From Octopus sinensis (lineage: Eukaryota): a stretch of DNA of 64,000 nt. Shown here piece by piece: positions 23,949 through 64,000 of this stretch. The notes beneath the pieces were generated by a model. That model did no database searches. It was not told the origin of the DNA and worked only from the letters and a program-made list of their open reading frames with translations. The translations under genes were made by a program, and so were the position numbers. The DNA lies in NCBI RefSeq assembly GCF_006345805.1, contig NC_043013.1:42842001-42906000 (forward strand), written 5' to 3'. Within the stretch, counting starts at the first letter, position 1, and each line of letters begins with the position of its first letter.

Positions 23949-26900
23949 GCGACCGTTAGTAAGACTGACCTGAGCTTTTGTGACGACTTCTGCTGCTCCT
24001 GCTCGTATGTCTTTTGTCATCTCTTCTGCTGGACGTTCTCCTGCTTTTATCATCTTTCTTTGATTCTCTCTTCTCAACTTTCTTATCACCATCTTTTTTT
24101 TCTGCAAACAGCACAAACACACATAGAGACACTATCACAATCTGGAGACTTCAAGGCAATACAGAGTTGCCTATAAGTGTCAACTAATCATTATCATCAT
24201 AGTTTTTAATGTCCACTTTTCCATGATTGCATGGAGAACAGGAAATTAGTTGAGGCAGATTTTGCTATGGACAGATGCACTTCCTGCTATGAACCCTCAT
24301 CTGGTTCCAAGTACAGTAATATGCTCTAATGACCAGGCATGTTTTCATGGAAGATTGGAAACACAGCAAACTGTTTACATCATAGCAACAATTCTTTACA
24401 GCTATCACAAAAAGTCAAGGCAAGGAGACAGCAACATACACACCCAAACACACGGATATGTTTATATATGTACTATATGTACAACAGACTTCTTTCAGTT
24501 TTTGCCTACCAAATCCATTCATGGGGCTTAGGTCAGCCTGGAACTATAGTAGGAAACACTCGCCTAAGGTACCACACAGTGGGACTGAAGCTAAAGCCGT
24601 GTGGTTAGGAAGCAAACTTCTTACCACACAGTCACACCTGATATTTATGATTCTTTGAATACTATTAATACTGTTAAGTAATTGTGAAATGCCAATGGTT
24701 TTATTAAACTAATTACTTGGTTAGTAACATGAAACACTAAGTCCAGCTAACTTCAATGCAAATGACCTATAGAGTCTCTGCATTGGAATTCTAGAGCCAA
24801 ATTCTGTTTAGAGTACAAATATGAAACACTGGAAGAAGTCATACCATCTTTCTTCACTTCAGGCTTTTCTACTTTCTTTTCTCCTGTTTTGGTTTCTGGT
24901 GCTTTAGCCTGAGTTGTAGGTTCTCTTTTAGCCTAAAAAAAAAAAAAACAGGAAATATTACTTATGACACCTCATCTCTAAACCCTTATTAACGATGTAT
25001 TTGTACTGCCTTCAAACACATACATACATTCAACAGTTTATCATCACACATCTCTCTACCAATAGATTATTACTGATATCATTGCACGTTATACATTCAC
25101 ACACACATCATAACTATGACCATCATCAGTCTAGCAGTTAAGATATTCAGGTTGGAGAAGAAAGCAGTGAAACTTCTTTACATCATACATAGCAGGGATA
25201 ATACAATCCATAAGCTTAAATGGGAGTTCAAGGGCTTGAGATAGCAGCTCACAAAGGCAAGAGGGGAGGAAAGGAGACCTCTCAATAAAAGTTCATGGCC
25301 CTTACAGCTGAATAGCAAAGGAGACAATGGACTAGGAAGCAAGCTAATTTTCAAGCAAACACATATGGGTTTACAAAATAGTTGCTGGGGCAAGGGTCAA
25401 ATCACTTGCTCCAGAGGCACAATCGAGTCATATGAGAGTTACTTTAAGAAGTGAGTTCAGGGACCATGACATAAGCCACTTAAAGCCCTTGAGCAATCCA
25501 TCTTCACCAGCTCTGGAATTTGACAACAAAGGACCAAGTTAGAAAGAGGTTTAGGAAATGGTTAAGAAGGTAAAGGGCAGGTTAAGCCCCAGAAGATGAT
25601 CAATACCTTCCAAAGAATTCAGTGAAGCCCTGAAGGTAATATGGAAGAAGATTGGGGTTGCTCATCAGTGGTAGTGTGAAGAAGGGGTGTTGAAAGGACG
25701 TTATTCTTCTGCACTGTTGCTAGCCACCTGACAAATTACCTCCAATGGAACTTCTATGCTGATACTTCAGTTCTGAAAGGACATCAGGGTGTCTAGAGCA
25801 TTCCAGTATGGTTAATCAGTTGATCAGAGAAACCTTCAACAAGAGAACTGGTACTATTGTGGCTGGACCTTACAAATGGCTTTTTAAACAGAACACAAAT
25901 TAAAAGACATCATTCTGAATTACTGCCACAACAGCTTTAGTGTCAGTCAGCTTTACAATATCAGAGTGGCACAAACCCAACAAGTGTACTGTAACTAAAA
26001 AAACATTTCAGTGATCCTTAACACACATGCTATGAAAATACTAAGCTGGTTGATGTGTACAGGACTGCTCACCAACACTGGTGTCTAATAGGTTCCCATT
26101 AAGGACATACTGACTATCCAGGAGGATCTTGAAGGGCTTTGATGAACTGATGACCTGGGTTTGCACCTCCAAGAGTTGAACAACACATATTTTTCTCAAT
26201 AACTGACCATAATTGATGATCTCAACCTTACTCTAAAGATAACCGATATCTATTTCAAATGCTGAGCATGTTTCTAACAGCTGACAATGAAATGCTGATA
26301 ACATTTAATTCAGTAGCTGATAAATGGGTCTGTAAACAAAATAATGAACTTTGGATAACTCACCCTTTCAACTGATATCATACGGCCATGCAGTTCAGTC
26401 TGATTAAAATGTTGAATACATTTAGAAGCTTCATGTGAAGAAGACATAGTTACAAAACCATAACATCGAGCACCAGGGCTTCGTGCATTTGTCACTACTT
26501 TGGCACCAACAACCTGATGTAGACAAAAACAAAAACTAAATTAAATTTTAAACACAAAAATTTACATAGGTAATTATTCAGCCCAATACTCATCAATATT
26601 ACCAATACTAATAAATTATTTCTGAAAATAGGTGCAGGAGTGGCTGTGTGGTAAGTAGCTTGCTTACCAACCACATGGTTCAGGGTTCAGTCCCACTGCA
26701 TGGCACCTTGGGCAAGTGTCTTCTACTACAGCCTCGGGCCGACCAAAGCCTTGTGAGTGGATTTGGTAGACGGAAACTGAAAGAAGCCCGTCGTATATAT
26801 GTATGTGTATGTATATGTTTGTGTGTCCGTCCCCCACCAACATCGCTTGACAACTGATGCTGGTGTGTTTACATCCCTGTAAGTTAGCGGTTCAGCAAAA

Positions 26901-29900
26901 GAGACCGATAGAATAAGTACTAGGCTTACAAAGAATAAGTCCTGGGGTCAATTTGATCGACTGAAGGCAGTGCTCCAGCATGGCCACAGTCAAAATGACT
27001 GAAACACGTAAAAGAGTAAAAGAGAATGATATTGCAGATTAAAAGTAGTAAATGTTTTATATAGAGTTTAAGTAAAACTCTTTACATAAAGGATTTTTAA
27101 AAATTAGTTTGGTCAGTGTGCATGGTCCCTTCCAAATTCTCTAAGACCATGAAAATCTATCAGTGATATTCTGCTTGAATAGTTGCAAATGTCATCTGCC
27201 AGAAAAGGATTCTAGAAAGCTAACATTCTGGGAAAAAGAACTAAGAACAGGGGGTTATTATAGGCTTTAAAGTAGAGTGTACACACAATGTCACTAACAA
27301 AATAAAAGAGAATCAAGCATCACAAAGTGGGGGTGGCACAAGACAAACCAGTTCCAAGGAACAGACTCCAATGCAGAAGGCATAGATAAGGGAAGAGAGA
27401 AAAGACAGCAGGTCCGTCAACTGGAAGCCTGAGTATGTTGACAAAAGTCTTTATACCATTCAGTTGAGTGCCATTTCAGTTGGATGTGGTTTATGAATAG
27501 CAACAGTACTGACACAGATGTGAGAAGAGTACACTATAGGAGGTTTCACCTGAGCTATGTAGAAGGCTAACAGCTGAAGTATTTCCTGGTCCTAAAGAAG
27601 ACAGAATTTGTGATTAAGTCCTTGCTCTTTTGAGGATATGGATTTACCAAGAGAGATCCTTAGCCAGAGCAAGGCCTAATATTTGGAAGGAGCACTCTAC
27701 AGTCCAGTTGCTGCATGTGCTTCATATTCAGAAACCAGAGTGGAAGTGGAGAGTGTCTGTTGAATGTGTCAAAACTAACACACCTTTGTTGAAGAATGTT
27801 TCCAAGAAGTCAGGGCAGGTTTGGCATGTGGTGAATGTGGATGACGTTTGGAGTAAATGATCAGGGATGATTGAAAAGTATCATCTACATAAGGGTGGTA
27901 GGTATTGCTGGAGGTGACTGAAAAAAGGTCATTGATGTATAGACAGAGGGCAAAACTGAACCATGAAGCAAACCAGAAGTTAATGGAATGTAAGTCTGAG
28001 AGAGCTATAGACATGTACATACTGAAGCTCTAGTCACCTTGACAGGAAGCCTCCAATCCAAGAACCCACAGGCAGTTAGATTTACTCAGAGATTTAGGGC
28101 ACATAAATCACAGTTAAATGCTTTGCAACATTGTTTTCTTCAGGTATTTTTCCAAGAGTAAAAACTTACCAACCTACTGATGAATGAAGAAGAACATGTC
28201 TCCAGTAGATTGGCTTTATATAAGCAGTAGTGGAGGTCATCAAGGGGAGAGATGGATTCTGAGTGTTAGAGAAGGTTATTTATGACTATCATCTCTAACA
28301 AATTGAAAGTGAGTGCAATAAGATGATGGTTGGAGTAATTTCCGGCAAATGGGACATATTGTAACAAGAATCCAAAGATTGGGATATATGGAGTCAAACT
28401 GAAGAGTTTGGTGAGGATAGGGTTAGCTACAGATTTCATGGCTAAAGGCATTATTGTTTTGAGGTGATTGGGAGAGATTTTGCATTTGGCATGTACGTGG
28501 TGGAGGAGGGGAAAACAAGTTTTCAGAGAAGATTTACTTAGAGTATGCAATGCAGAGATGGATACAAAGTAAACAATCCCTGTAGAAGCTTCCTGTTGAA
28601 GAGTACTGGTTGCTGAACCAGAGAAGTGGAAGGGAGAAGGATTTTGCAAAGATGACTCAAATCAGTTTTGAAAACAAACAAGATCAGTAGTTGCTTTTGG
28701 AAATGAGAAAGCTTACCAGTTGTACCATACATGGCAGAATCCTTTGCATTTCAGATAGTTTTGCAGATTTCATGAAAGCTGCCTTGTTTGTAAGAGTGCT
28801 TTTTCTCTAAGTATTTCAGGCTGTATGCTTTGCATGAAATGCTACAACACAGCTAAGACTGAACCACTTAGAGAACCTGAGACAATAATTTTGGTTTTGC
28901 ATGGGATATAAAGGGACATGCCAAAGAGTATGTTTTCTGTCACCCACCTAGCTGTCTCTGATGGGTCCAGATTCAAGCATGTATGTCAAAGAAAATAGTG
29001 TAGAACTAGTGGAGTTCTAACCAATCTGCTATAACCTGAAGTGCCAAAGAGTTCGAGTGAGCAGGGAAGGTATGTCAAGCAGTACATGCATATGTTGTGG
29101 ACAACCACACACAAAGCAGAGAGTGGTGGTGGTGGTTTGACAGTGGCTACATTTGGAGAAGAGAAAGTTGTTTAGAGTGTAAACAACACACTAGACTAGT
29201 ATAAATAGTGTGAATATAAGTACTAATTAGTAATAAATATGATTAGTAAAAAATTACATGAAATAGAAGAAACAAATTTTATTCAACATACCTTGCCATA
29301 TTTGGTAAAAAGCACTTTAAGGTCTGTAGCACGGGTACTTGTGGCAAGACCACTGACCCACAGATTTCGATTACTTTGGTCATTGCCTATTAAGTACAGA
29401 AATAAACTAATATGAAAAGATTACCAGGAAACCAGACCCTGTAAGATTAAAATTTCAAATACCTCACATTTAAAACAAAGGCTTAGTGAATAATAAGATT
29501 CAGAACATGTAGAATAATAAAAAAAAACTTACTTCTCATATTCTTGATAACTTTGGGTTTAGAAGCTGAAGAACTGCAACAATAAAACAATCATTGAGAA
29601 ATATCAGAATGATGATTATCACTAATGAATGTCATAGAAGTGTATTGGAACAATTTTTCATCATTCATATGAATTAAATATAATTAGCAAAGTCAAACAA
29701 TATCACTCCATTCTAGGACCCTAACTCTAAATAGATTTGTAGAGATATATATTTAAGAAAACAAATAAGGGCTATGTATGTATGTATATAGACATATACA
29801 TATGCACTTCTTAAAGAAATTCTTATTATGTAAGGGAGAAAGAATGATGCAATAGAATAACTAATATTTAGCAAAGCATAGACGTTCCACACACTATGTA

Positions 29901-45091: not shown

Positions 45092-48000
45092 ATCTAAATA
45101 AAAGTACTTTTATGCAAAAAAAATTTTTAAACGCAATTTAGTGTGTAGACATGAAGCATTTGAAAAGAAATTCATATAGACAGAAATAAGGCTGATATAG
45201 TGCTGTAGAGTACATACTGATCACAAGAAATTGCTGCCGTTTAGTGGGAGAAGATAGAGATCCATCTTCTCCCTCTCAAGTGTATATCAGCAAGATCTAT
45301 TTCGTGGATGAAGAACTTATCCAAACTTGTTCGCAGTTACAGGACCCCCATCTCCTTGTATAGCTAGTGTAAGACTTCAATCTATCATGGACTCCTCGTA
45401 AATTTTATGTTATGTTAACAATTAGGATCATTATCACTAATGACCAGAAAACCTTCCTCTATTGGTGCAACTCCTCAGCCATCTTTTTACAATTTGTATT
45501 ACAATGGTAAGTCTGTAATAAACACTCACGATAATAATTGCTATCTCCTGTAAAACAGCTACTCATTGCTAGAGTTTCTATGTGGTCATTTGGCCTGCTT
45601 GAAATAGCTGCCAAATCTCACTCGAATCAAACCCCATCATTTCAATGTAATCTTACATACAGTTAAAAGAATTCGAATGGTCATGGTGGGAATGCCATTT
45701 ATCATGGGGCTGTTTGAACTAAGCTGACATGGTATTACAAAGCAATTGCTTTCACAATCACTGGTCTTTGTGTTCAGCATTCTTTTTTCACAAAATTTGT
45801 TTGTAAATCTTAGAAGCAAAAAATCTTACCTCAGTACAACCAGTCAGAATGGTAGCTTCAATCACATGGAGCTTAAGAGTTTTTGACAGGTAATCTCGTT
45901 TTATTAGCTTTGTTATCAAATTTGTTAACACCATACTAGATGATTCCAATTTCATTTGAATATCATGAAAGACATCAGTGGGTTGAAGAGAATTGAAAAG
46001 CTGTGTCAGTCAGCAGCATCATTAAACTAAATTACATAAAACTACATTCACCTCTAGTCCAGTTTCTACCCACCTTCCACACTCTTATGAAATTACCCAC
46101 CATTTACTTCCCCATCCCTGATCCACAGTCTATATTCTCCCTTATACTCATCTTCTTGTATCTTGAGAGTATGCTCTAGCATCCAGTCACCAACATCTTT
46201 ATGACTTCCTCCCAGCAACTCTCAGCCATCCTTGTATAATGTGAGATAGCCATTTATTTCCTCTACAGCAAGAGACCTGTGTCTGTCTTTCTATCATATT
46301 TAAGTTTTCAACACCTGGCATAAAGCCACCTCTCCTCTCAGACACACTCCTACACAGTCGAGGGGGGTTTTCCCTTTCTTTTGCAAGTTCTTTGGTGACC
46401 ACACTTGTGCCAATGTTGCAAGAAAAGCATCCAGTACACTTTGTAAAGTGGTTGTCATGAAGAAGGGCACCCAGCCATACAAACCACACCCAAGATAAAA
46501 TTGGAGCCTGACACAGCTTATCAGATACTTTCAAACCATACAATTTGTTGTGGCGAGAATCATCAACACCCCTGGCGGATTGGACAATGGACTAGTCGAA
46601 CTCTTATAAAGAGTAGTAGTGGGGAGAGAATTTTGGTATACTTGGGAAGTACATCCTTTGAACACATTGATTAAACCTCCGCTGCATAATTTTATATATA
46701 CCACCTGTGGCAGGATATAAAGGATACATACACACAAGCAAATAAAGGAACCTTTTTTAAATTTTCATTTATTTGCTTGTGTGTATCATCATCATCATTT
46801 AACGTCCGTTTTCCATGCTAGCATGGGTTGGACGGTTTTGACTGAGGGCTGGCAACCAGATGGCTGCACCAAGCTCCAGTCTTGATCTGGCAGAATTTCT
46901 ACAGCTGGATGCCCTTCCTAATGCCAACCACTCCGAGAGTGTAGTGGGTGCTGTATCTTTTATATCCTGCTACAGGTTGGTATATATAAAATTATGCAGC
47001 GGAGGTTTAATCAATGCGTTCAAACGAGGTACTTCACGAGTCTACCAAAACACTCCCAACTACTACTCTTTATAAGAGTTCGGCTAGTCCATTCTCCAAT
47101 CCACCAGGGGTGTCAATGACTCTCGCCACAACACAATTCATGCCAACATAATAAAAAGATATTAAATGATGATGATGATGACTGTATAAACTGAGTTGTA
47201 CACCTTGGACTGGACTGTATCTGTTGAATAATGGCAGAATACCCTGCACAATGTAATTTTGTGGAGTTAGGATGGATATTTCAAAAAGCCACCCTTAGTT
47301 TCTATAATTTTGCAAGAAGCTAGACTAAATATTTAATAGTATTTCTTAAAATGTTGATGATTGTGTAACAAATTTTTGATTTTGTTTATATTCCCACAAT
47401 TCTATTCTCGGGGTCAGTTAGTAGCTGATGCAGCTCTCATGCTTGTAGGAATAAAAAGTTTTACTCTTATCTTTAAATATAAGTTTATTTGAGACATCCT
47501 CTCCACTCATCAGCAGATGTATTATTCGAGATGATTGTCTGAGTCTGCCTCAAATAACTGGAGAACAATTTTACATATGATGTGGGTGTTACTTCTGTGA
47601 GCTTGTAAGGTATGATTGACAGCCTCAAATGCAAGTCTGTGAGACATCATGCACTCATACTTTTAGTTAGGTCTACTTCAGGATCCCTACTTTTCTAAAT
47701 CATCTGCCAATATTGCATACAGGAGTGTCATTGTGTGCAAGGTTCAGTAACAGCTGATAGCAAAAACAACAGGTCCTGCCACCTGTGAGCAAAGTTGCAG
47801 CAATTCCAAAAGAGGTCACCACAGAAACAATCTCTTTGAGTGAATGAACTTTTTGTGGAAATTAAGTCAAGCAAAAGTTGTCAAAATTAGGTCGATAGCA
47901 AAATCAAACATTTTGACTGTTCTGCCAGAAGCTTCAAGGTAAACAAAACTGTGACATGTTGAAAGAGAGTGAGAAAGAGGATAGATAAAAGAGTGACATG

Positions 48001-48474: not shown

Positions 48475-50079
48475 TCATATACCACCACCACCCCTATGTG
48501 AAACCATGAGCCCACTATGCACCTGTGAGTTACCAAACATGTTGCCACGTCCAAAGTACTGCCCCATCCCCCCACTGTTACCACTTCGACTACTGTTAAC
48601 AAATGCTCCGGTGGCATCACGTCCTGTTTTGTTCATGGGGTTATTAAGCCACGGTCCATTGGGTTGGTTCATGCCACTGTTGCCAATGTCTCCATGCATG
48701 TGGGACCAGTTGTCCATTTTTCTATCTACACTGCCGGAATCCCAAGGAGATCTCTGGTCAGGTCCATCACCTAAAAGGAAAAGAACAGAAAAGGTAGCAT
48801 TTAAAGATATACAAATATGAAAAATGAAAAGTTCAATGAATTAACTATAGAACAGAATAAACAGGAGAATGTAGATGAATGAATGCAAAGACAGAGAGAT
48901 ATGGAGGAAAATAGGGCTTTACCCTTTAGCATTCAGATTACTCAGTCAAATGTTTCTTTATTCACATTCTTTTGAATTAATCATGCATTATCTTGTAGCT
49001 TTGAGATTGCAATGAAGTGATTCTATATTTTGAGAATGACATTGTAGAGTTGGTATGAGAAGACAGATATGGTTGAATATAAAACATAATATAGCCAGCT
49101 TAAATGAGAAAACGTTAAAAGAGAAAAATAGAGGGACAGCTACAAAATGGTGGAGGATGGAGGTGAAGCTTTATTTGAGAGAGAAGGAGAGAAAAATGAT
49201 TAAAACAAGCAGAAACTTACCTAAAGAATTTCTGCCCAGTCTATTGTGAGTTGATGTGTTTTGTTGGTCATTATCACATCCTCGGTCGGGACCAATATAT
49301 CTTCTATCAGGTTCTCCACTAGGTCCCGTATCTCTTCTTAACTCAAAGGGCACCCTGGAAATGAATCCATGTATACAAGCTGAGCAATCAATCAACATTC
49401 ACCTATATACTTAGAGCCTTGTGCTTACATCAACACTGACCCATACAGAGACTGGCATACATGCCAACACCAATCCACAATACACCAAAACTGAGCTGTA
49501 TAGAAACTAGTGTATACACCGAGTCTGATTGATATGACGATTGATGTTTATAATAATACATACTAGCAAATGTGATGATCTGTATAAAGGCATAAGATCA
49601 AAACCAAAAATTAAGATCTAAAAAAACAAATTACCAATTGAATTTTTCATCATTTCGAGAATGGTTATCAATTTGTCCTTCACCTCTGACTCGTGTATTG
49701 TGAAAAGGACCCATCTCCATTCTCATCATTTCTCTTTCTTTATGTTCATCACAGCGACTTCCACCTTCCCTTCTATTGTACCGTTCACTTCCATAATCTG
49801 TATTCTCATATTCATTATACCTGAGAACGAAAATGAGAGATGAAATGAGATGTATTTTATATATACATATATATATATATATATACATACATATACATAC
49901 ATATACATACATACATATATATCATCATCATCATCATCATTTAGCGTCCGTTTTCCATGCTAGCATGGGTTGGACGGTTTAACTGGGGTCTGTGAAGCCG
50001 GAAAGCTTCATCAGGCCCAGTCAGATTTGGCAGTGTTTCTACAGCTGGATGCCCTTCCTAACGCCAACTGGCGTATATA

Positions 50080-50174
<95 letters not shown>

Positions 50175-53100
50175 TGCAAGGAAATATGATGACTGTTACA
50201 TTAATGATGCTCATTAAGGCAGAAACATGTTCTGAGCTGCCCTCTTGTTTTCAAAGAAAACAGACTGCCTTTTCCTTAATGGTATATTAATTTGGGAGAA
50301 TTCTTGATTCTTGATATTGTATCTCTTTCTCATTCAGAATCAGTAGCAATTACCAGCAGGTCTTTGTTTACCTTCTCTCAAAGCAAAGATAATTTCTATA
50401 AATCAGAATTGATTTTGTATGATATTTAGAATACTTTTATTCACTTTGTTCTTGAAATTCATGCTACTAACCAGTGAGTTCACACACACACACACACACA
50501 CTCCTCACAGTTACAAACATTATATATCTTGAACATATTTTAACCTCTCATTGCTTAGGATACAGCTGCCTCCATTGTTACTGCAGTCACATTTGGTCAA
50601 ATAAAAAAAAACCCACTTAATCAAAGAAACCATGTCAAAACAGGTACTAGAGCACGATGCAGTCCTTCACTGCACCAGATCCTGTCAATCTGCCCATGTC
50701 AGCATGAAAGATGGATATTAAAAGATGATTACCCTCACCACTGATCAAATCGACCATATTTTAAGAAACAGCTCAATGCAAATACAAATGCAGATGTGAA
50801 ATTTTATTAACCACATAACTGATGCCTGCATGGCTGTGAGGTTAAGAAGCTTACTGCCCAAATCTGTGGTCCTGGGTTCAGTCCTAATACCTCAGGCCCA
50901 TGAAAGCCTTGTGAGTTGATTTCAGAAACTGAACGAAACCAATAGTATATAAATGTGTGTGTGTGTAACTTCTGTTGACATCATGTGATGGTTGTAAATG
51001 AGCATCACCGTCATAACAGGGGTGTTGCTTGTTTCTAGTCTTCCATGAAAAAAACATGCCTCACCAGAGAATCTACCTTAACAAATTCTGTCTGATCCAT
51101 GCAAGCTTCAATATGTGCTTGTATTTCATCAAAAGGCCCAATTAAACATAAGATGGAACCAGATCGATGTATATCATGAAAAATAGTGTTGTGATACTGG
51201 ACAAATTTAGGCACAGAGTAGCTGTGCAGTTTCTGGTTCAGTACTGCTGCGTGAAACTTTGGCCAAGTGTCTTCCACTATACCCTAGCCCAACCAATACA
51301 TTGCAAGTGGATTTGATAAATAAAAACTATGCTGAAGCCTATCATATACATGAACACACACATATGTGTGTATGTGTGTGAGTGTCTTTGTGTCCATCTT
51401 TGTTCTCTATCACTGTTTGACAGCTAGTATTTGTTTATGTCTTTATGTCCTCGTAACTTAGCAGTTCAGCAAAAAACACTGGTAGGATAAGTACCAGAGT
51501 CGATTTGTCCAACTAAATCCATTGAGGCAGTGCTCCAGGTTGGCTGCTTTCTTTTTTGCCTAAACTAAAACAAGAGGCAAGAAAAAAGAAAACCAGTGGG
51601 GGAAGGAACAAAACGATACAGAAGCACACACACACACAAGCCAGGTAATAAGAAATCAATGACAACATATTGCCTCCATTTGCAGCTTACTGTGATTCAT
51701 CCTGGAATGGAAGTTCAAATCTAGACGGGTTACCAGAAGCGCTCATCCTGGATTGTTTATGTTCATCCCAGAGTTCTCTATCATGAAAACCACTTCGATC
51801 ATGAGGTCTTTTGGCGGAATATCTCATTTCTTCAAACCTGATATTAAACAAAAAACAGCAAAATCAAGTAATTAGCAACTGTACTAAATGACAGGCAGCT
51901 AAAAGATAAGGTAGTAAATAACTTTAGCTTTTAACAATTAACAACCAGGACACCAGTTTTGAAAATGTTGCCTCTATGTAGCCATTACACATACTAGAAA
52001 TAGCACCCAAAGCTTCCTCAAATCATCTTCAACTACCTTGAAAGAAAAACAAAATGTTTAATGCATTGGATAATGTAGTCCGACATTATGTCTAGAAGAA
52101 AAACAAAGATCTAAAATAGAAAAGAAAAGTAGAATGACCATAGCTGGAACTCATTTGATTATAGGTTTGCTCCATCTGGGGCTAACTTAGACTAAACAGA
52201 ACCACCACCAATGAGTTAATACCCACGTAACAAAAAACAAGGTAGTAAACATTCCCCAAATGAAGAATACAGACGGCATATCAATGCAGATAATGGGATT
52301 AATGCTAATCCCATTATCTTGCTACTAAGTAGCTAAAGACCATCACAATAAACGATCCCACGCTAATATATAAAATTACTTTGTAGGCTTGCAGTTGTCA
52401 TTGACTATTTAAAACTGATCTAGCAGACATACAATGTAAAGTATTCCCTGCAGTCACGGAATGTGAAGATTTGGCTGTTACTGCTAGCAGATCAAGTAAT
52501 TGCACCACATACATGCTTCCTCAGGCCATCTATAACTATCATTATTATTATTACTAAGGTGGCGAGCTGGCAGAATCATTAGCATGCTGGCCGAAATGCT
52601 TAGCGGTATTTCACCCATCGCTCTCTACCAGGTTCAAATTCCACCAAGGTCGAGTTTGCCGTTCATCCCTTTGGAGTTAATAAAAATAAGTACCAGTTGA
52701 AAACTAGGGTCAATGTAATCAACTCATCCTCTTCCCCCAAAATATCTGCCCTTGGGACAAAATTTGAAACCATTATTATTATTATCATTAGACTGCAGTT
52801 GTGTTAAATATGATGTTGGGTAAGTAAGTCAGAAAGGACATTAGCACCACTGATTCATTGTCTTGCTTCCTCCATTATGAGATCAACAGATGAGCACATT
52901 ACAATATCTTTTCATACATTCGTTATCATCTCACACATGAATCTCATTTGAAGTTACTTTCCACTATTAGGAAAAGTCCTACATCGTAATCATCAATTGT
53001 CGTCATTTAACATCTGCTTTCCATACTAGAATGGGTTGGACGGTTTGACTGTGGGCTAGTGAACCAGATGGCTGCACCAGGCTCCAGTCTTGATCTGGCA

Positions 53101-56100
53101 GAGTTTCTACAGCTGGATGCCCTTCCTAACGCCAACCACTCCGAGAGTGTAGTGGATGCTTTTACATGCCACCAGCACGGGGGCCAGTCAGGTGTTACTG
53201 GCAACGACTGCGCTTGAATTTGTTACACATGCCAACGGCACAGGTGGCAGTAAGGCGATGCTGATAACAATCCCGCTCGAATGGTGCCTCCTACAAGCTA
53301 CCGGCATGGAACCTAGTTAGCCGCTCTGGCAATGATCACGCTCGGATGGTGCTCTTAGCACCCTACTAGCATGGGGCACATGTGCCAGTAAGGCAAAGCT
53401 GGCAACAATCACACTCGAATGGTGCCTTTTATGTGCCACTGGCACGGAAGCTGGTGAGCTGCTCTGTCAACGATCACGCTTGTATGGTGCTCGTGCCCAA
53501 TCTAACAAACAAAACAAACATGAAATTATTCAGGGGGAATAAAATACAATTCAGTCAAATAAGTTGTATCAAAGACACCAAAAAAAAAGCAATGAGTTTA
53601 TGTCATAAGCATTTAGAAACGTTGAGAGAGTGTGAAATAATTTGTTCTCATCTGTACAGCCCACTGTAGATAAAGCTATAAATAATAACAAGTAAATATT
53701 GGCTTAAAAACATTTTTGGATAGAAAAAGGCAAAGTGTGCCTGAGGGACAATGGTAGAATGTCTGTCAAATTTACAGAAGATGTAAGGTCTTGCCCAAGG
53801 GTAGCCTTTTGGCCTTTTCTAACTAAAAGGGTTCTTAACCCAATATTTACATGATACTATTTATGGCTTTAGCTACTTAAAGTTTTACAGTGAAAAATTA
53901 ACCATTAAGTTCACAGTATGACAGTATAACGACATAATCTGTCTAACTCACCGTAACATCTCAGCAGAACGCATCTCTTCTTCATGCCTTTCCATTTCCA
54001 AAAGTTCTTTTTCCAGCCTGTATCTTAATAATTTCTCTTTCTCAAGTTTCATTCTCTCTAACCTGAAAAGTGTGAAAGAATTCAAAGATATCATCAAAAA
54101 TTTAAACAGAAAATAAAAATGAAAATGACAATCCCTGCCTACACTCACCAACTTGTAGATACCCTGACACATGTTACTCTACAAGAATACGCAAGAGACA
54201 TTCTTTTGAATATAGGAGATATTACATATTTGTCCACATGTCATTTTACAAAACTTAAATATTAGGAATGTCAGATGATGCTTATACATTTATATAGAAA
54301 CTATAAAGGTATGCAGAATAAAGAAAAGCCTCTTGATATAGAATATAAACACATTTCATCCCTTGGGAAAAGGAAGTGAGTCAGGGACACAGTAATAGAG
54401 TATCAGACTCCTAAACAATGGACCAACATCACTGTGAGGTGGACAAAGATAAGTACCATGAAGAGGCATCATGTAACAACCTGTCATTTAGAAAAGAAAA
54501 CAAAAACACATAGATACTATAAGTACTATAGAAAGCCAAAAAATGGAATTGTTACACCTGGTAGGTCTTTGATCATAGTTTTGCATAACTAAATACAAAG
54601 AACAGTTCACAACAAGAATTGGGGAACTGTTTGTCCAACAATCGTTTCTTAACCTTTCATTGCTAGGTTCAATTCTTTCATGGGTTTTGAAAGAGCACTG
54701 AGAAAAGCTGCTCCAAATATACCATCCTCCTTTTACCTCACAACAGAGTCTAAAATTTACAATGGTGTCCAACAAACTCACTGGATTATCAAATTTTAAA
54801 AATAATATCAGGAGACTGCTAAAACAATTTAAACGGAGAATCATCATCATCGTTTAACGTCTGCTTTCCATGCTAACATGGGTTGGACGGGTTGATTGAG
54901 GACTGGCAAGCCAGAAGGCTGCACCAGGGTCCAATCTGATCTGGCAAGGTTTCTACAGCTGGATGCCCTTCCTAACGCCAACTGCTCCAAGAGTGTAGCA
55001 GGTGCTTTTTATATGCCAGTCCAGTGGGACTGGCATTGACCATACTTGAATGATGCTTTTTATGTTCCCCCGGCACAGGTGCTAGTCAGGTGGTACTGGC
55101 ATCGGCTACGACAATGATTTCACTTGACTCAACAGGTCTCTCAAGCATAGTTTATTGCCTAATGATTGAAGGGTACTCTTCAAAGGGCTGGTTATGTGAC
55201 ACCAGCATAGGCCATGGTTATGGTCTCATTTGGCTTGCCGGGTCTTCTCAAGCTTAGCTTATCTCCAAAGGTCTCGATCACTTGTCATTGACTCCACGAG
55301 GTCCAACAATCGAAGGTCATGCTTCACCACTTCACCCCAGGTCTTCCTGGGTCTACCTCTTCCACAGGTTTCCTCCACTGTTAGCGTGTGACACTTTTTT
55401 ACACAGCTGTCCTCGTCTATATGCAACACATGACCATACCAGCGCAGTTGTCTCTCTTGCACACTCTATCTGATGCTTCTTATGTCTATGAACTTTGCCC
55501 AGGCTATTCTTATTCTAGCAGCTATGCTTTCAGAGCATCCACCCCCGCTACTGACTTGGTCACTTAGGTAATGGAAGCTATCAACTACTTTCAGTTTTTT
55601 CCCCACTGTGCATCTGCTACACACAAAAACTATCTTCCCAGTTAGCCTTCCTTTGAGATTGCTGCACCTCTTATGTGTCCATAGCTTACACCAGGTACAT
55701 CTTATGAAGTTTCTACCTACGCCTTTTCTACAGATTGAGCAGGGCCATCTACTTGAAGGGATTTGTGATTTGTCTGCCTTCCTATTTATTAAGACTTTGG
55801 TTTTTGCTAGATTGACTCTAAGGCATTGGTCAACCTAAGTCTATGATAGAAAACACCTGTCCAAAATGATTCACAATGACACTGAATTTGATATTATTGA
55901 GGTGTTAAGGAAACTTCTTACCCACACAATCATGCAGTTTTGTCTTAAGCAGTTTAAACGTGAATGCACTTTTAACAAACCTTATCTTCTCTCTAACACT
56001 GTCCAATCTTATGGCCTCCTCCTTCAGTTTCTGTAACAGTAACAACATAATCTGTCTCACTTACCGCAACATCTCAGCAGAATGCATCTCTACATCACGC

Positions 56101-58280
56101 CTTTCCATTTCAAGAAGTTCTTTTTCCATTCTGGATCTTAATAGTTTCTCTTTTTCTAGTTTCATTTTCTCTAGTTTCATTCTCTCTGATCTGAAAAGTG
56201 TGAAGGAATATAAAAATAACATTAAGAATTTAAACGGAAAAAAACAAAAAAAATTTTTTTAACGAAAATCCCTACCTACACACACCAACTTCTATGTACC
56301 CTGACACATGTTATTCTACAAGAATACCCAAGAGATATTCTTTTAAGTCTAGGTGAAATTACGTATTCATCCAAATGTCATTAAATGAAGCTTAAATATT
56401 AGGGATGTCCGATGACAGTGAGGAATCAACACAGAAACTATAAAGGTAAGTAGAATAAAGAATAGCTTCATAATCCAGAATATTTAAGGGATAAAGATAA
56501 AATACAAATACATTTTATCACTTGTAAATGTGTAGTGTATCAGAAGGACAAAATGACCAGAATACTAACATCATTGTGAGCTGGACAAAGACACATAAAT
56601 CTTCAGTTAACATTCACATAACACTTAAATAAGTACCATCAGGTGATATTATATAACACTAGCACTATGACCCGGCGTTGCCAGGTCATAGTGCTAGTGC
56701 ATGCATATACAGCTGCGTGTGTGCGCACATACACACTAGTACTGTCCAAATCTCTGACCAATCCTATACAGTTAGCTGGCATTCAATAGGTGTATCAAGT
56801 TTCGGGCATTTTGATTGGATTTTGGATAGAAAATTCACAAAAAAGTCACTTCTATTGATTTTTTTAATGGTTTTGCAGGGTGACTGGGGAAATGTAAAGA
56901 TGTGCACGACCACCCTTGGATGGTTTTGAATGACTGTAGAAAGTGCGAGCCCTCTAACTAAAAGATTGATTTGTATAAAGGACACACACATAGACAGACA
57001 TTTTGCCGTTTATATATATAGAGATACTATCATTTAGAAAAAATACATAGATAATATAGTCCGATAGATAGCCTTGAAAAGAAGAATGGTTACAGCCTTT
57101 GATCATAGGACAGCATGATAACTAAAGAATAACACAAAGAACAGTTCATCACAACAATCAAGTAACTGTTTGTCTGACAATCATTTCTTTAATTTTCACT
57201 GCTAAGTTCAATTCTTCCTTGGGTTTTGAAAGGATATTGAGGAAAATTACTCCAAATATGTCAGCCTCTCTTTGTCCCAAAACAGAATTAAAAAATTACA
57301 ATGGTGTCCAACAAACCTACAGAGTTATCAGATCTTAAAACTAAAAATACCAAAAGATTGCTAAAACAATTTAAACAAAATATATAAATAATAAATATAT
57401 CACTGAATTCATCTTACATGTTCTGATCTTTAATTTTCTTCTCATATATACTGATTATCTTTCTTCTTTTCCCATTCATTTAAAATAACCAGTGATCAAA
57501 TTCCATATTCCAGATATGCCACAAATACAGTCTAAGAGATCTTTGAAATATCTTTAGAGTTTCATCAGAAGAGAAAGAGCAGTATTTAAAGTGCTTTCTT
57601 GGTGTGTCCAAGGCTATTAGAAGGAGGGAAGAACTTGTCTTTAGATCAGAGACCCATCTTGGAAGTGTGAAAGAGTGTGTACTCAGCTAAAGGCCTCCAA
57701 GAACCAGATGTGGAGTTAAACCAGGTGACAGAAGTATTCTGTCACAAAAACTTGAATAGTCTTTCAGACAAGGTTTAATGTTTCTATCTACAAAAAAATT
57801 TCACTGACAAAGCATTGGTCAACCTGAGCTTATGATACAAGACACTTGCCTGATGTGCTGCACATTGAACCTGAAACAATGTTATTGTTAAATAAATTTA
57901 ACCATACAGTGATGGAATCCAACATTAAAAATTGCAATTTTAGTGGAATTTCAAATAACCTTAACTGCTTCCGCACCATGTCCAATCTTATGGCCTCCGT
58001 CTTCTGTTTTTTTCCCACATTTTTCTGAAGCTTTAAAGCTAACCGATGTTTTTGTGGCCGACCTTTCTCCTGTGCTTTAAGGTCAGGTTTTCTCCGACGT
58101 GTATTCTCTATTCTTCTTTCCTTCAACAAATTTGGTGGAAATTTTATTTTTATTTTCAAAAATGGGAAAAGGAAATGAGAATGATTTTCAAGTAGCAAAG
58201 AATAAAACAACAATATAAAATGCTTAACTCTGCCCCCCCCCCATAAAATGAACCGATTCTACAGAACAAATGCATGTGTG

Positions 58281-58336
<56 letters not shown>

Positions 58337-61300
58337 ATGTGTGTGTGTGTGTGTGTGTATCATCATCATCATCATTTAACGTCCGCTTTCCATGCTAGCA
58401 TGGGTTGAATGATTTGACTGAGGACTGGCAAACTAGATGGCTGGTTTACTAACACACACTGCCCACAGCTGATTTACTAACACACACTGATTTACTAACA
58501 CTCTGCCCACAGCTGAATCTATTAAAAGGAGAAGAGGAACTGACAAAGCTGATCACATATTCTTAATTCAATAGCTGACCATTTGGTTTATAAACAAAAC
58601 AATAAATTGAGGATGTCTCACCCTTTCAACTGTTAATCTCATACCATTCACTTGAGATTTATTCAACCACATTATACATTGCAAAGCTTCAGCCTCAGTA
58701 GACATAGTAACAAAAGCATGACATCGACCGCTACGTTTGTATAACTTTGTAACCTTTTGGCAATCCTCAACCTAATAAAAAATAAAGAATTAAAATTTCA
58801 TACATGAAAAATTCAGTCTGTATTCAGCTCCAGTGTCAGTAGCAGCAGTATCATCCTCACTAACAACATATCAATTCTAAATTATTAGAATGACATTGCA
58901 GATTTAAGTAAAACTCACTTCAGGAAGCAAGGTAAGAGAATAGGGAGATTACCATATTTCATAGCATAAAAGACACATGGACATATTGAATCTGCCTATT
59001 TCAGCAGTAATACCCGCAAGAGAAAGTTTTTAGTGCATTGAAGTAATACAAGCCCAATATTGTATATAGGACTAGAGGTGACTATTTGAGATATTTCTCT
59101 GAAATGCATTTCATATACCATCAAATGCAGTAATTTTTGGTCTAATAATCTGGTCTGGGGGAAAGGGTGGTGCCCATGGCCTTCACAGGTTCTGAAACAA
59201 ATGAAATCTACAAGAGTAATATTTCTTCTGAACAATTTCAACTGACAGCTGTAAGGAAAGAACTGCAGTAAGCCAACATTCTGAGAAAATAAAAGGACTC
59301 GGAATAGAGATTAGTGTGTAGTATGGGGTTAGGTTTAGAAACAAGAACATACAAGTCAGTAAGGGCTGTTCAATTGGAGGTGATACAAGACAAGCCAGCA
59401 CCAAAGAACAAGTTTTGCTGAAGTAACTAACTGTTGTAAAAGCAGAGAAAAGAGTCAGCATATCTTTGGATTAAAGACTGAAGAGTATTGTCAACAGAAT
59501 CAGACAATTTTATTGGGAATGCTTGCAGATTAGAGCAGGAATCAGGGAAGGTAGGGCTGTACTGTAACACAAAGAAAACAGAACTGCAAGTATTCAATCA
59601 CGAAATGCCTGTGTCAGTGAAAATGAGAGACGGTAAGTTGTTCAAGGTAGTTGAAAGTTTCAAATACCTTGGTGTGTGGACATGAAGTACTGAAAAAACA
59701 TCATAGCAAGGAAAGCTCTTGCCTGGAGTGCATGCCATAAATTGAGAAAGGTATGGAGTTTAAAGTTAGCAAAGAAATTGAAAGTGAGGTTCGTTTCTGG
59801 CAACAGTGGAGTCTGTTCTTTTATTCAGGACTGAAACATGGATGCTCACTAAAGCACTGAAGAAACAGTTGGTCGGTTGTTATACGAGGATGCTTAGAAT
59901 GGCAATGTCTCCTGGAAGAGTCATACAACAAACACTGACTTATACCAGGGACTAGCAAAAGTAACACTGAAGATACTGCTATGCTGAAAATATGTGTTCA
60001 CAAGAAGAGAACTTTCTTGACGGTGAAGCTATGCTTTTGCAGAAACTTTAGAAGTTCAGCTGTATGCTCTTCATGCCTAGAGGATGTAAGTGATTTTGTT
60101 TACTTGGTATGTGCAGTGATTATGCCTTTATACTGGAGGAGGAGGAGGAGTCAAGATTGATATAATCCTATTGAAGAATGTTTTCAATGACTCAGTTCAA
60201 GTCAGTACAGGTTTTGTACAATCATACAGACGATGCTTGGGGACAAGCAGTGAGATAGGATCCAATAATACAGACACCTGCGCAGGAATGAGCTCTGTTG
60301 AAGACAATGGAAAGTAAATCACTGATGTATAAAAAGACAAAACTAAACCCTTGGTACACCAATGTTGACAGAATGTGAGTCTAAGAAAGCTCTATATACA
60401 TGGTGACATGTATGAACCCATACATGAATAGAATAGTTGAGAGACTTACAAGTCAAGTACAGTTGAAGGCTTGATTGATGTCAAAGTATAACAATGTTGT
60501 TTCCACCAAATGTTTTCATTAAAAGCAAAATTCCATTGGTGAGAAACATATGAACAGGTCTACAGTTAATATGTCCATTAAAAAGCCTTACTGGTAGCTA
60601 TTAAGGAGCGAGAGACATTTAAACGGCTGGAACAGATGGTTGTTAGGACTTTCTTCATCACATCTGAAATGTTAGAAGTGAGTATAGTTCAACAATTATT
60701 GGTGTTTGTAGCACAATTCCAAAGACTGCAATATATCACAGTGTGCTTGCAACAGAGCAAACTCCATAGAAAGCATAATGATTTTAGGAGTGTACAGTAT
60801 GATGTATTTATTGAATGGAAAGAAAAAGCCAAACACTTTACATGGTCACTCTTTAAATGTGGGAAGACATGACAAATACGAGAATGGTGCGATAATTTGA
60901 TAAATGGAAAATGAAAGAAGCCTCTATGTGTGTGCGTGTGAGCGCATGTTTCTATCTTGACATCATCATCATCATCGTCGTTTATCGTCCGTTTTCCATG
61001 CTAGCATGGGTTGATTGTTGTAAATGAATGCAAAAACATGCCTGGCCATCAGGGAAATATTACCTTGCTTGGAAACAAGGGTTGATGACAGGAAATGCAA
61101 CTGGTTGTAGAAAATCTTCAATAAATTCTATTCAATCCATGAAAACATGGAAAAGTGGATGTTAAAACAATTCTGAAAATCACGACAATCATTATTAATA
61201 AATAACATTTATTGAAAGACATAAAACACATTTCATTCAACATACCTTGCCATACTTGCTAAAAATTGAGATGAGGACTTTATCAGGGATATTTGCAGGA

Positions 61301-61529
61301 AAGCCACAGACCCACAGATTCCGATTGATTTGGTCATTGCCTATTGATATAGGAATGTATCAATAAATACAAAAAGATGATGAGGAAATGCAACCCAGTA
61401 AGGTCAGAATTTCAAATAATTCAAAGAAAAGCAACAAGCTTAGAAAGTAAGCAAAGAGAATGTGAGAAAACATGCAAAAGAAAAAAGAAATTACCTTTTT
61501 TGGCAGCTTTGGGCTCAGAAACCAAAGAA
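48475..61529 (-). CDS. SAFB: SAFB/SLTM-like gene, copy B (3' part, about 479 aa; 5' exons lie beyond the window end)
   Basis: Exons 5'->3': 61495-61529, 61246-61340, 58622-58771, 57960-58120, 56065-56190, 53952-54062, 51691-51837, 49635-49820, 49221-49354, 48475-48770. All are GT-AG, phase-compatible and stop-free. Nine are homologous to copy A exons, and intron homology continues to the window end. Confidence 0.88.
50091..50175. repeat. (AT)n microsatellite; similar (AT)n/(CA)n tracts at about 380-486, 23905-23946, 58279-58358 and 61710-61806
   Basis: Directly visible. Confidence 0.95.
54840..55490 (-). mobile_element. RTE-type LINE 3' fragment with RT C-terminus
   Basis: QERQLRWYGHVLH...CGRGRPRKTWGEVVKHDLR, followed by the 3' UTR and (GAT)n tail. 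Further tails at about 39.7, 46.8, 49.9, 53.0, 58.4, 61.0, 61.8 kb and (plus strand) 62.4-62.7 kb. Confidence 0.9.
56659..57024 (-). mobile_element. Non-autonomous Helitron, copy-B-specific
   Basis: A|TC start, gacctggcaacgccgggtc hairpin and CTAG|T end. The flanks join to match the uninterrupted copy A intron near 21040-21055. Confidence 0.8.
58622..61340 (-). CDS. SAFB: Copy B divergent RRM exons (61246-61340 and 58622-58771)
   Basis: NRNLWVCGFPANIPDKVLISIFSKYGK / VEDCQKVTKLYKRSGRCHAFVTMSTEAEALQCIMWLNKSQVNGMRLTVER. Exon lengths (95 and 150 nt) and splice sites are the same as in A. Confidence 0.9.
59490..59990 (+). mobile_element. Decayed LINE RT C-terminal fragment (RTE-like)
   Basis: KVGLYCNTKKTE...VESFKYLG and TVESVLL...ETWMLTKALKKQLVGCYTRMLRMA. 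Confidence 0.8.
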
Positions 61530-61797: not shown

Positions 61798-62843
61798 ATA
61801 TATATATCATCATCATCATCATCATCATCATTTAGCGTCCGTTTTCCATGCTAGCATGGGTTGGACGGTTCAACTGGGGTCTGGGGAGCCCGAAGGCTGC
61901 ACCAGGCCAGTCAGATCTGGCAGTGTTTCTACAGCTGGATGCCCTTCCTAACGCCAACCACTCCGAGAGTGTAGTGGGTGATTTTATGTGCCACCGACAC
62001 AGGTGCCAGACGAGGCTGGCGAACGGCCACGCTCGGATGGTGTTTTTATGTGCCACCCAGGGATGTACTGCCTGGGTAGGCAAGGTAGGCAGTACCTACC
62101 CTAAATAAAATAGATCGATAGTAATATTTTCCTTTTCGGCAAAATATGCACCTAATTCAATAAAATTATGAAGGTTACTCTGATTACTATGCAAAAAATA
62201 CAAAATATTTTATTTTTTTGTAGATTAGGTAGGCATAATTTGCCCCTGCCTTTCAATCTCAGTATTAAAGCTACGCATAGAACTGCTGTAGTACACATGC
62301 TGCGTACATTCCTACAACAATGTTTTCTTTACGTGCTATAAGACATGTTGGGGCAAGCGAAATCGAAATCGAATTGAACCAGCCAGGATCCCTGGTCTGG
62401 TGGTACGTAAAAAGCACCATCCGACTCGTAGCCGATGCCAGCACCGCCTCGTCTGGCTTCCGTGCCGGTGGCACATAAAATACACCAATCCGACCGTGGC
62501 CGTTGCCAGCCTCGCCTGGCACCTGTGCAGGTGGCACGTAAAAAGCACCCACTACACTCACGGAGTGGTTGGCGTTAGGAAGGGCATCCAGCTGTAGAAA
62601 CACTGCCAGATAAGACTGGAGCCTGGTGCAGCCTTCTGGCTTCCCAGATCCCCGGTCGAACCGTCCAACCCATGCTAGCATGGAGAACGGACGTTAAACG
62701 ACGATGATGATGATGATGAAAAGAGTAAGTAAATCTGCCCACAACTCCGTCGCATGCCTATGTTTCACATTATTTTTTTATGTGTTTAAATACATAAAGG
62801 CACCAACTGCCTACCCTGAATAATTACTGATGGCACATGCCTG

Positions 62844-62875
<32 letters not shown>

Positions 62876-64000
62876 ATACAGACACAAAAACCTATCTGCA
62901 TTTACATATCTATTAGTTAAAAGACAGCATCAAAGTACATTAGAATGATGTTGCCGTCTTCCTAGTTAGCAAAGCATACTGAATGCTCCACAACATAAGT
63001 TTCTTACCAATACTATCAAATTAATATTGCATGTAATGGAAATATGATGATGAAAGAAGCTTACCTGTTGTAAAGATGTGTTTATGTAGAAGTGATTTAT
63101 TATCACCTTTCAGGAATAAATGAATACAAAAGACACTAATTTCAAATGAAGATATTGGTTATGACGATAAATGGATTACCTAAACTAGCTAACTGTCACT
63201 GCACATCAGCAATGTATGACTAACACTTATGACGAAAGATGTACAGAAATACAGGAACTATAGTCTTCATGAAGCTAAAAAGAGGTCAGCAAGCAATGTG
63301 GAATTCCCTAAATGGTAACTGCTAATTTAGCAGGAACATGGCTGGAATACGAACACAATTAACTTAGTCTTCTGGTTTTCCAAACATCTTCCAATCTGTA
63401 TCTTGTCAGAAAAATTATTAATTATCTAACATCCACTGAGTCATGTCTATATTCTTGGGGACTCAGGATCCCCACCTCCTCTGCTTCAGGTGTTTGTTGT
63501 CATCTTCATCCAAAAAGACATTTTTGGTTCTTGACATGGGTTAATCTGTTCTTGTAGTTAATCTGTCACTAATTCGGTAATCACATCTAACATTGAGCAT
63601 GCGTAATAACACAGTCAAGCCCCAAACAATTTGCTGGCCTCTTTTTATTTCATGAACTATAGTTTATAATAACCAAGTAAAATATGATGAATATTTACTA
63701 ATATAAGTAGTGCAACATTAACTACCAACTATTCATATTGGGATCACCACATGCCCCCACCCAAAACACTACATTAATCTGTTAAGAGACTATAGCAAAT
63801 AAACATGGAGGAAACAGGCTTTAACGAGAAACTAACGGAAAGATATCTTGACATGTTTAGGTCAGTTATGGCCCAGGCTATGTTGTACTTACTTGTACCA
63901 CCACAGTACAATCATTATAGTATATTTTTATGCTTTCTGAAGACTAGAGAGATGTCTACCATATTGTTAGTAGTCTGGAATTCAACCCCACACTCAAACC

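Follow-up and report, generated by a model that had tools for sequence, protein, structure and literature searches.

Can the RRM of an SAFB-type protein be largely replaced while the gene that carries it stays under selection, and what would drive such a change? The question arises from a 64,000-nucleotide (nt) stretch of the Octopus sinensis genome (NCBI RefSeq assembly GCF_006345805.1, contig NC_043013.1, positions 42,842,001 to 42,906,000 of the forward strand; hereafter the window, with positions counted from its first letter). There, the minus strand carries two SAFB-like genes, B and, downstream of it, A. A first-pass annotation, made from the sequence alone, had read the RRM of B as positively selected on its RNA-binding surface. 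With somewhat better than even confidence, we favour a history in which B would be a functional gene whose RRM and following glutamate/arginine-rich (E/R-rich) exon were rebuilt, once B and the canonical lineage had parted, by a burst of residue replacement at a rate equal to or exceeding neutral; purifying selection would then have acted on the new sequence.

Replacement of the RRM on the B lineage

Comparison by blastn revealed a collinear duplication, interrupted by repeats, that pairs 45.1–64.0 kb (B) with 13.4–31.0 kb (A). Positions 63024-64000 on the B side align with 29927-30957 on the A side, upstream of the first RRM exon, and the 5′ end of B lies beyond the window. As we read these alignments, the window holds two tandem members of an SAFB gene cluster of Octopus.

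Without gaps, the A and B RRMs have 35 of 81 residues in common (BLASTP E = 2e-24), the number that the first-pass annotation had reached by hand. Its counts for the second RRM exon (R2, 150 nt) were likewise reproduced: A and B differ there at 56 nt (62.7% identity) and at 31 of 50 residues, and among the 19 codons whose residue is conserved, 4 have changed synonymously. For the RRM in full, 8 of 35 such codons have changed synonymously and 27 are the same. The outer ends of the two RRM exons of B coincide with the span that the annotation had marked (58622-61340). Exon lengths (95 + 150 nt), phases and AG/GT splice sites are the same in A and B, as had been stated, and the same exon lengths and phases recur in the O. 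bimaculoides genes C (canonical) and D and in one distant animal. The rewrites described for RNP1, RNP2 and the β2–β3 loop can be read directly from the sequence. Residues kept in B (L8, W9, V10, L22, F26, V32, V38, C48, F51, V52, M54, A60, C63, I64, L67 and V79) are, on general knowledge of the RRM fold, what we take to be its buried positions plus two of the three RNP aromatics, in agreement with the earlier remark that the fold core is retained. The kept aromatics are the Trp of RNP2 and the Phe at RNP1 position 5; at RNP1 position 3, Tyr has become His in the B genes of both species in which we found one (see below).

Lineage polarity was set with O. bimaculoides C and D, Argonauta and two distant animals. 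Among 46 differences between the A and B RRMs, 38 are derived in B, 1 is derived in A and 7 are ambiguous. At 57 positions the six canonical sequences (A, C, D, Argonauta and the two distant animals) are invariant, and B is altered at 30 of them. B has thus not kept the near-invariant SAFB RRM sequence: it is 43% identical to A, compared with 74–86% for A against SAFBs of distant animals. The ratio of non-synonymous to synonymous divergence (dN/dS, ω) for the canonical SAFB RRM background is ~0.03, from which the B branch differs at P = 4e-9 to 5e-12. The burst in the B RRM probably followed the split of B from the canonical lineage.

To locate the changes in the fold, we took secondary structure from an AlphaFold model of a canonical SAFB RRM (predicted local distance difference test score, 84.9), numbering 81 residues. 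The fractions of positions changed in B were 2/7 in β1 (7–13), 5/5 in loop 1 (14–18), 6/8 in α1 (19–26), 5/8 in β2 (32–39), 7/8 in loop 3 (40–47), 2/7 in β3 (48–54), 6/11 in α2 (57–67), 3/3 in β4′ (70–72) and 4/7 in β4 (75–81). By class, the RNP strands β1 and β3 change at 4 of 14 positions, the helices at 12 of 19, loops 1 and 3 at 12 of 13 and the edge strands at 12 of 18. The first-pass claim that change is focused on the RNA-binding surface therefore failed: the RNP strands change least, and helices, loops and edge strands most. In canonical RRMs the helical face makes no RNA contact, and because this face has been rewritten as much, 'RNA-binding surface' is too narrow a description.

Buried positions and most RNP residues are thus kept in B, and nearly all other positions are replaced; the replaced positions would be exposed ones, at sheet edges, in loops and on both helices. 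B still matches Pfam RRM_1 (PF00076) over profile positions 1–69 of 70, with 35.1 bits against 47.2 for A and a cut-off of 20.7. The B domain would still fold as an RRM and contact RNA through the Trp of RNP2 and the Phe of RNP1. Its specificity or affinity may be altered by the Tyr-to-His change in RNP1 and the new β2–β3 loop, and its protein partners are probably different.

An intact and constrained gene

B comprises 8 exons with 430 open codons plus the stop within the window; all splice sites are AG/GT, and there are no stops, frameshifts or broken splice sites. Non-coding alignments of A and B show 22 indel events per kb, 18% of them multiples of three. At that rate about 25 indels are expected in the 1,109 coding nt shared by the two genes; 5 were seen, all in frame (P = 1.7e-4). 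The probability of finding no stop in the B frame under 10–20% neutral substitution is 0.012–0.0003.

A second B gene was found in a genomic contig from Sequence Read Archive run SRR11869390 (L001), where an R2 exon of B type, its splice sites intact, reads VVSCQMVSKLRKSGERCHAFITMSTEAEALQCIMWLNKSYVNGMKFTVER. R2 of B and of this orthologue are 82.7% identical in nucleotides, and the stretch RCHAF(I/V)TMSTEAEALQCIMWLNKS is kept between them save for the V/I exchange. Across β3–α2 (22 codons) the pair shows one conservative change (ω 0.11), and across the last 35 codons of R2, 8 of 105 nt differ, with dS 0.157 and dN 0.062. Flanking introns diverge between the species by 0.132 for the B pair and by 0.16 for the A pair, for which dS is 0.177. 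On the B branch, ω after the species split is ~0.4. The low ω of the core between species therefore places the new core sequence under purifying selection, with the loop region still changing. In the first 15 codons of R2 (58727-58771, β2 and the loop) lies a hypervariable patch in which 18 of 45 nt differ between the B genes of the two species, silent sites included, and compensating indels in the β2–β3 loop of B are possible.

Other B-like sequences were scarce. To assemble a dense set of B orthologues, we searched with the RRMs of B and A and with the last exon of B; the hits were mostly short open reading frames (ORFs), with one B-type sequence and one A-type last exon from a related species. 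A representative protein search (1.84 billion cluster representatives) gave no other B-like RRM; within that library, its nearest single-domain relatives are proteins of the SAFB type (40–44% identity), Octopus and Argonauta SAFB1 among them. B might then be an unexpressed or dying copy whose RRM is decaying, known as it is from DNA only, with its 5′ exons out of view, with no annotated B-type RRM protein among those representatives and with a single genomic ORF as its counterpart. We find this hardly credible against the open frame and AG/GT sites of all 8 exons, the in-frame indels, a probability of at most 0.012 for the lack of stops, the single conservative change over the 22 codons of β3–α2 in the orthologue and the retained RRM_1 match. 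On sequence evidence, B is not a pseudogene, and we class it as an intact, constrained and lineage-restricted SAFB paralogue.

Rate of replacement and the case for selection

Whether the B RRM changed faster than neutrality allows depends on the neutral yardstick. Along the collinear A/B chain, 7,685 non-coding columns could be aligned, of which 19.2% are mismatched (Kimura two-parameter distance, K80 = 0.225); its blocks are 74–88% identical. The earlier figure of 80–85% intron identity is correct at aligned positions (80.8%) and does not stand with gaps counted (68–86% per block). The intron between the two RRM exons, 2,474 nt long in B and 2,778 nt long in A, is filled with different repeats in the two copies and aligns only over short exon-adjacent stretches. 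Compared with 81% identity in aligned non-coding sequence, the RRM exons of A and B are 67.1% identical (74.2% in the first RRM exon, R1, and 62.7% in R2). The RRM has thus diverged faster than the aligned introns, as first claimed, but the exon-versus-intron contrast overstates the excess because synonymous sites (fourfold degenerate sites, 27/85 = 31.8%; dS 0.44–0.51) are about twice as diverged as the aligned non-coding sequence. Between A and its own orthologue, and between A and canonical C, synonymous and non-coding divergence agree.

Nei–Gojobori estimates for A against B gave dN 0.419, dS 0.486 and ω 0.86 over the RRM, with ω of 0.53 in R1 and 1.12 in R2. For exons E4–E7 the values were dN 0.126, dS 0.436 and ω 0.29. 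Exon E3, the E/R-rich exon next after the RRM, is as diverged as the RRM (41% identity), with dN 0.42 and a dS of ~1.0 that is unsafe owing to low-complexity alignment. Synonymous divergence is alike across exons (0.39–0.52), which makes the RRM exons no older than the others.

Because nearly all replacements fall on B, ω on the B branch (ωB) is about twice the pairwise value. Non-synonymous divergence of B is ~0.40, equal to or above every neutral yardstick under a clock. Taking the neutral depth of B as half the A–B distance, we obtained ωB of 3.5 with the intron yardstick, 1.9 with fourfold sites and 1.6 with dS; the corresponding binomial excess on the B branch had P = 3e-14, 2e-5 and 1e-3 (dS/2). 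When the seven β2–β3 loop codons, whose alignment is doubtful, were dropped, ωB was 3.0, 1.65 and 1.3–1.4 (P = 2e-10, 1e-3 and 0.02–0.04). Over E5 and E6, dS is similar for A–C, B–C and A–B (0.35–0.52), so B does not simply evolve faster at silent positions.

We then tested ωB against 1 with a purpose-written likelihood program of the Goldman–Yang type. With a neutral scale shared with the other exons, ωB was 1.5–2.6 (P = 4e-5 to 0.13, and at most 0.04 in 7 of 8 settings). With the second-species B exon added, stem ω was ~5 (P = 0.008–0.06 with a clock), compared with 0.34–0.41 on the tips (P = 0.02–0.07 against 1). The dN/dS check that the first-pass annotation proposed for the B branch thus yielded estimates above 1, with P from 4e-5 to 0.2 according to clock, neutral yardstick, codon model and loop inclusion.

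These rates bear on the alternative of relaxed constraint, in which B was freed from the constraints that RNA and protein partners place on the SAFB RRM and drifted near neutrality, foldability kept the core, weaker constraint followed and no adaptive retargeting took place. Codon-only tests leave ωB = 1 unrejected, and the excess vanishes if the neutral rate lies near the upper bound of dS. The spread of replacements over helices, loops and edge strands, not centred on the RNP face, also fits relaxation, as do traits of B that look degenerative (three linker exons lost, a weak E3 acceptor and a C-terminal frameshift common to A). Yet the core is constrained, so a domain-wide ω of 1 or more implies a value above 1 outside it. 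The excess over the intron, fourfold and dS/2 yardsticks, the joint model in 7 of its 8 settings and the fall of ω from stem to tips also tell against relaxation, which we consider possible but on balance doubtful.

Differing ages, not selection, could produce the same contrast if the RRM exons of B came from an older paralogue, or were spared a gene conversion that homogenized the introns. The cluster does have a complex past. At the RRM, dS is 0.13 for A–C, 0.20 for C–D, 0.27 for A–D and 0.49 from B to each, so that the other three all lie equally far from B. Over R1–E4, A stays close to C (dS 0.12–0.21), but in E5–E6 it is as far from C as B is, and A therefore looks mosaic. Non-coding divergence is heterogeneous (chi-square 41.6, 18 degrees of freedom, P = 0.001), with its peak beside the first RRM exon (26% mismatches against a mean of 19%). 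However, RRM synonymous divergence (0.49) matches that of E4–E7 (0.44), 27 of the 35 conserved residues keep an identical codon, blastn detected no near-identical A/B tracts of the kind that mark recent conversion, and A and B have derived states in common (the deletion near the C-terminus, and Asn at position 5 of the RRM). We regard such an artefact of history as very improbable. A saturated and much older B was rejected as well: the proportion of synonymous differences, 0.36, is far from saturation and codons of conserved residues are mostly identical, although one likelihood run favoured it. A itself is best treated as a stand-in for the canonical RRM and not simply as the parent of B; by its divergence pattern it is a mosaic member of the cluster.

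Several points weigh against the history favoured here. B is known from genomic sequence alone, with its 5′ end outside the window. Change on every exposed face is also expected from a loss of specific constraints. The two neutral yardsticks disagree two-fold. With two distant outgroups and no clock, ωB was 4–12 but differed from 1 only at P = 0.08–0.18, and with equal neutral depth for A and B (a clock) it was 1.9–2.0 at P = 0.045–0.08. With the shared scale, P varied with the codon-frequency model, the calibrating exons and loop inclusion, the weakest value being 0.13. A seven-taxon clock tree was unstable, with a stem ω of 1.5–2.1 (not significant), and one run favoured a saturated stem with ω 0.18. 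Finally, the SAFB family history is reticulate, the probable cause being conversion of A by the canonical gene or the reverse.

Positive selection remains the most likely driver of the burst in B. Asymmetry towards the B lineage, ωB of ~1.3–3.5 and an intact gene with an orthologue all support the first-pass claim of selection, whereas tests of ωB above 1 are not robust; because the likelihood results range with the setting, we rate selection as likely but not proven.

Gene structures, relatives and meaning of the octopus cluster

Gene models (Table 1) were built by mapping full-length Octopus SAFB proteins from the representative search (O. sinensis XP_036366411.1, O. vulgaris and O. bimaculoides) back onto the window.

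Table 1. Positions in the window of the exons of B and A and of the repeats described in the text
Feature	Positions	Strand	Remarks
B RRM exon 1 (R1), 95 nt, NDQINRNLWVCGFPANIPDKVLISIFSKYGK	61246..61340	-	RNP2 = LWVCGF; AG acceptor, GTATGT donor
B intron between RRM exons, 2,474 nt	58772..61245	-	alignable to A only beside exons
B RRM exon 2 (R2), 150 nt, VEDCQKVTKLYKRSGRCHAFVTMSTEAEALQCIMWLNKSQVNGMRLTVER	58622..58771	-	RNP1 = RCHAFVTM
B exon E3	57960..58120	-	E/R- or K-rich; 41% identical to A E3
B exon E4	56065..56190	-	second tandem copy ~54064-53951
B exon E5	51691..51837	-	
B exon E5b, 186 nt	49635..49820	-	open, AG/GT; in canonical SAFB too; absent from A
B exon E6	49221..49354	-	
B last coding exon E7	48475..48770	-	ends GGGI*; frameshifting deletion common to A
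A SAP exon	43813-43678	-	ATG lost, 1-nt insertion
A small 5′ exons (two)	38651-38418, 40421-40344	-	
A acidic 5′ exon	31795-31193	-	
A RRM exon 1	29292..29386	-	canonical SAFB sequence
A RRM exon 2	26364..26513	-	canonical SAFB sequence; 49/50 identical to O. sinensis SAFB1
A lysine/serine-rich (K/S-rich) linker exons (three)	24932-24846, 24102-23959, 23418-23224	-	no B counterpart
A exon E3	22308-22145	-	
A exon E4	20382-20257	-	second copy ~18799-18686
A exon E5	17145-16999	-	
A exon E6	16362-16223	-	
A exon E7	15820-15531	-	
SINE-like repeat, examples	1233-1410, 1629-1850, 46785-46952, 49927-50068, 52988-53163, 54840-55011, 61818-62057, 62416-62711		

Exon by exon, B is collinear with canonical SAFB1/SAFB2/SLTM (O. 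sinensis XP_036366411.1, O. vulgaris CAI9735056.1, O. bimaculoides XP_014769865.1), and like them it has an RRM split at the same codon, E/R-rich exons (the E/R-rich region after the RRM is present) and a Gly-rich end. Besides the divergence of its RRM, it differs from them in lacking a K/S-rich linker of ~150 residues and the last 19 residues. Each gene lacks exons that the other keeps: the three K/S-rich linker exons are missing from B, and E5b is missing from A. Exons E3–E4 of B align to residues 608–705 of O. sinensis SAFB1, with E4 84% identical and E3 diverged and K-rich.

At the 3′ end, the Gly-rich C-terminus ending ...RMQEPRFDAYNIMGSM is absent. In A, B and the second-species A orthologue, the terminal (GGT)n run has a frameshifting deletion, after which the frame ends at GGGI*; it costs A and B the last 19 conserved residues. 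The deletion site lies at ~15531-15545 in A and ~48475-48490 in B (minus strand); canonical Octopus SAFB continues past the GGGI* point to ...MSGRMQEPRFDAYNIMGSM, and the lost tail is legible in another frame at 15534-15478 in A and 48478-48422 in B (minus strand).

Both genes contain a tandem internal duplication of the end of E3 plus E4 (18.2–19.6 against 20.0–21.6 kb in A; 53.5–54.8 against 55.8–57.7 kb in B), and the two symmetric E4-like exons of each copy could be alternatives or both be included. Relative to O. bimaculoides SAP exons, the SAP exon of A reads CTG in place of ATG and has gained 1 nt within an A-run; A may be without a SAP domain, or a homopolymer assembly error may lie behind the altered exon. 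By inspection only, the RRM intron of B appears to hold, on the plus strand at ~59300-60050 and antisense to the gene, the degraded C-terminal portion of an RTE-like, non-LTR reverse transcriptase interrupted by stops; a short interspersed element (SINE)-like repeat lies in the same intron at 60962-61013. Across the window, a SINE-like repeat of ~175 nt has at least 10 copies at 70–90% identity. The window is AT-rich (32–41% GC), and ARAGORN and Rfam searches of its 64,000 nt gave no match.

SAFB genes are clustered in other octopuses too. In O. bimaculoides (CM046617.1, 46.09–46.17 Mb) at least three, C, D and T, lie in 81 kb in tandem and inverted arrangement, and an O. vulgaris gene model spanning 101 kb adjoins another SAP + RRM gene. 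No B-type exon occurs in the 81 kb of O. bimaculoides sequence examined. We considered D, which lies upstream of the gene most like the 5′ end of A, as the orthologue of B and rejected it: D keeps an ancestral E4 region resembling that of Argonauta where A, B and C share a derived one, and it is no nearer to B than to A.

Among solved structures, the best matches of the B RRM are the RRMs of Sxl, ELAV/Hu and PABP, and several of its changes approach the general RRM consensus (RNP1 G to A, giving xAFV; LN(K/G)xxxxGxxLxV). These proteins are nevertheless no closer kin to B than any other RRM, its exon structure and flanks being those of SAFB. To our knowledge, rewriting of an RRM to the degree seen in B has not been reported for SLTM. 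Within the SAFB family, SLTM offers the comparison of a duplicated vertebrate gene that has kept the SAP–RRM–E/R architecture and taken on partly separate roles, with RNA targets largely those of SAFB1 and SAFB2 (PMC10901741).

SAFB proteins are conserved and bind both RNA and DNA. In mammals and flies they bind purine- or adenosine-rich transposon RNA, L1 RNA being one case, and suppress its exonisation; the paper that showed this credits invertebrates with just one SAFB gene (PMC10901741). The octopus tandem cluster runs against that statement; our literature search found no paper linking SAFB and octopus. The rewritten RRM, together with loss of the K/S-rich linker, would give B a new or narrowed job and not that of a redundant SAFB. 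A more specific proposal is that B, arising from an octopus-specific tandem expansion, was adaptively retargeted, its RRM rebuilt for another class of RNA, such as lineage-specific retroelement transcripts of this repeat-rich genome, with the loop still diversifying; we put this forward as speculative and rather unlikely in that full form. Conflict with transposons, or a specialization for germline or neural RNA, as the first-pass annotation had suggested, would be conjectural roles for B.

What the locus presents is a cluster member in which over half of the most conserved domain of the family has been replaced and which selection has nonetheless kept. If the replacement was adaptive, B would be a natural experiment in the retargeting of an RRM, and it would hint that cephalopods have diversified an SAFB defence or RNA-processing system.

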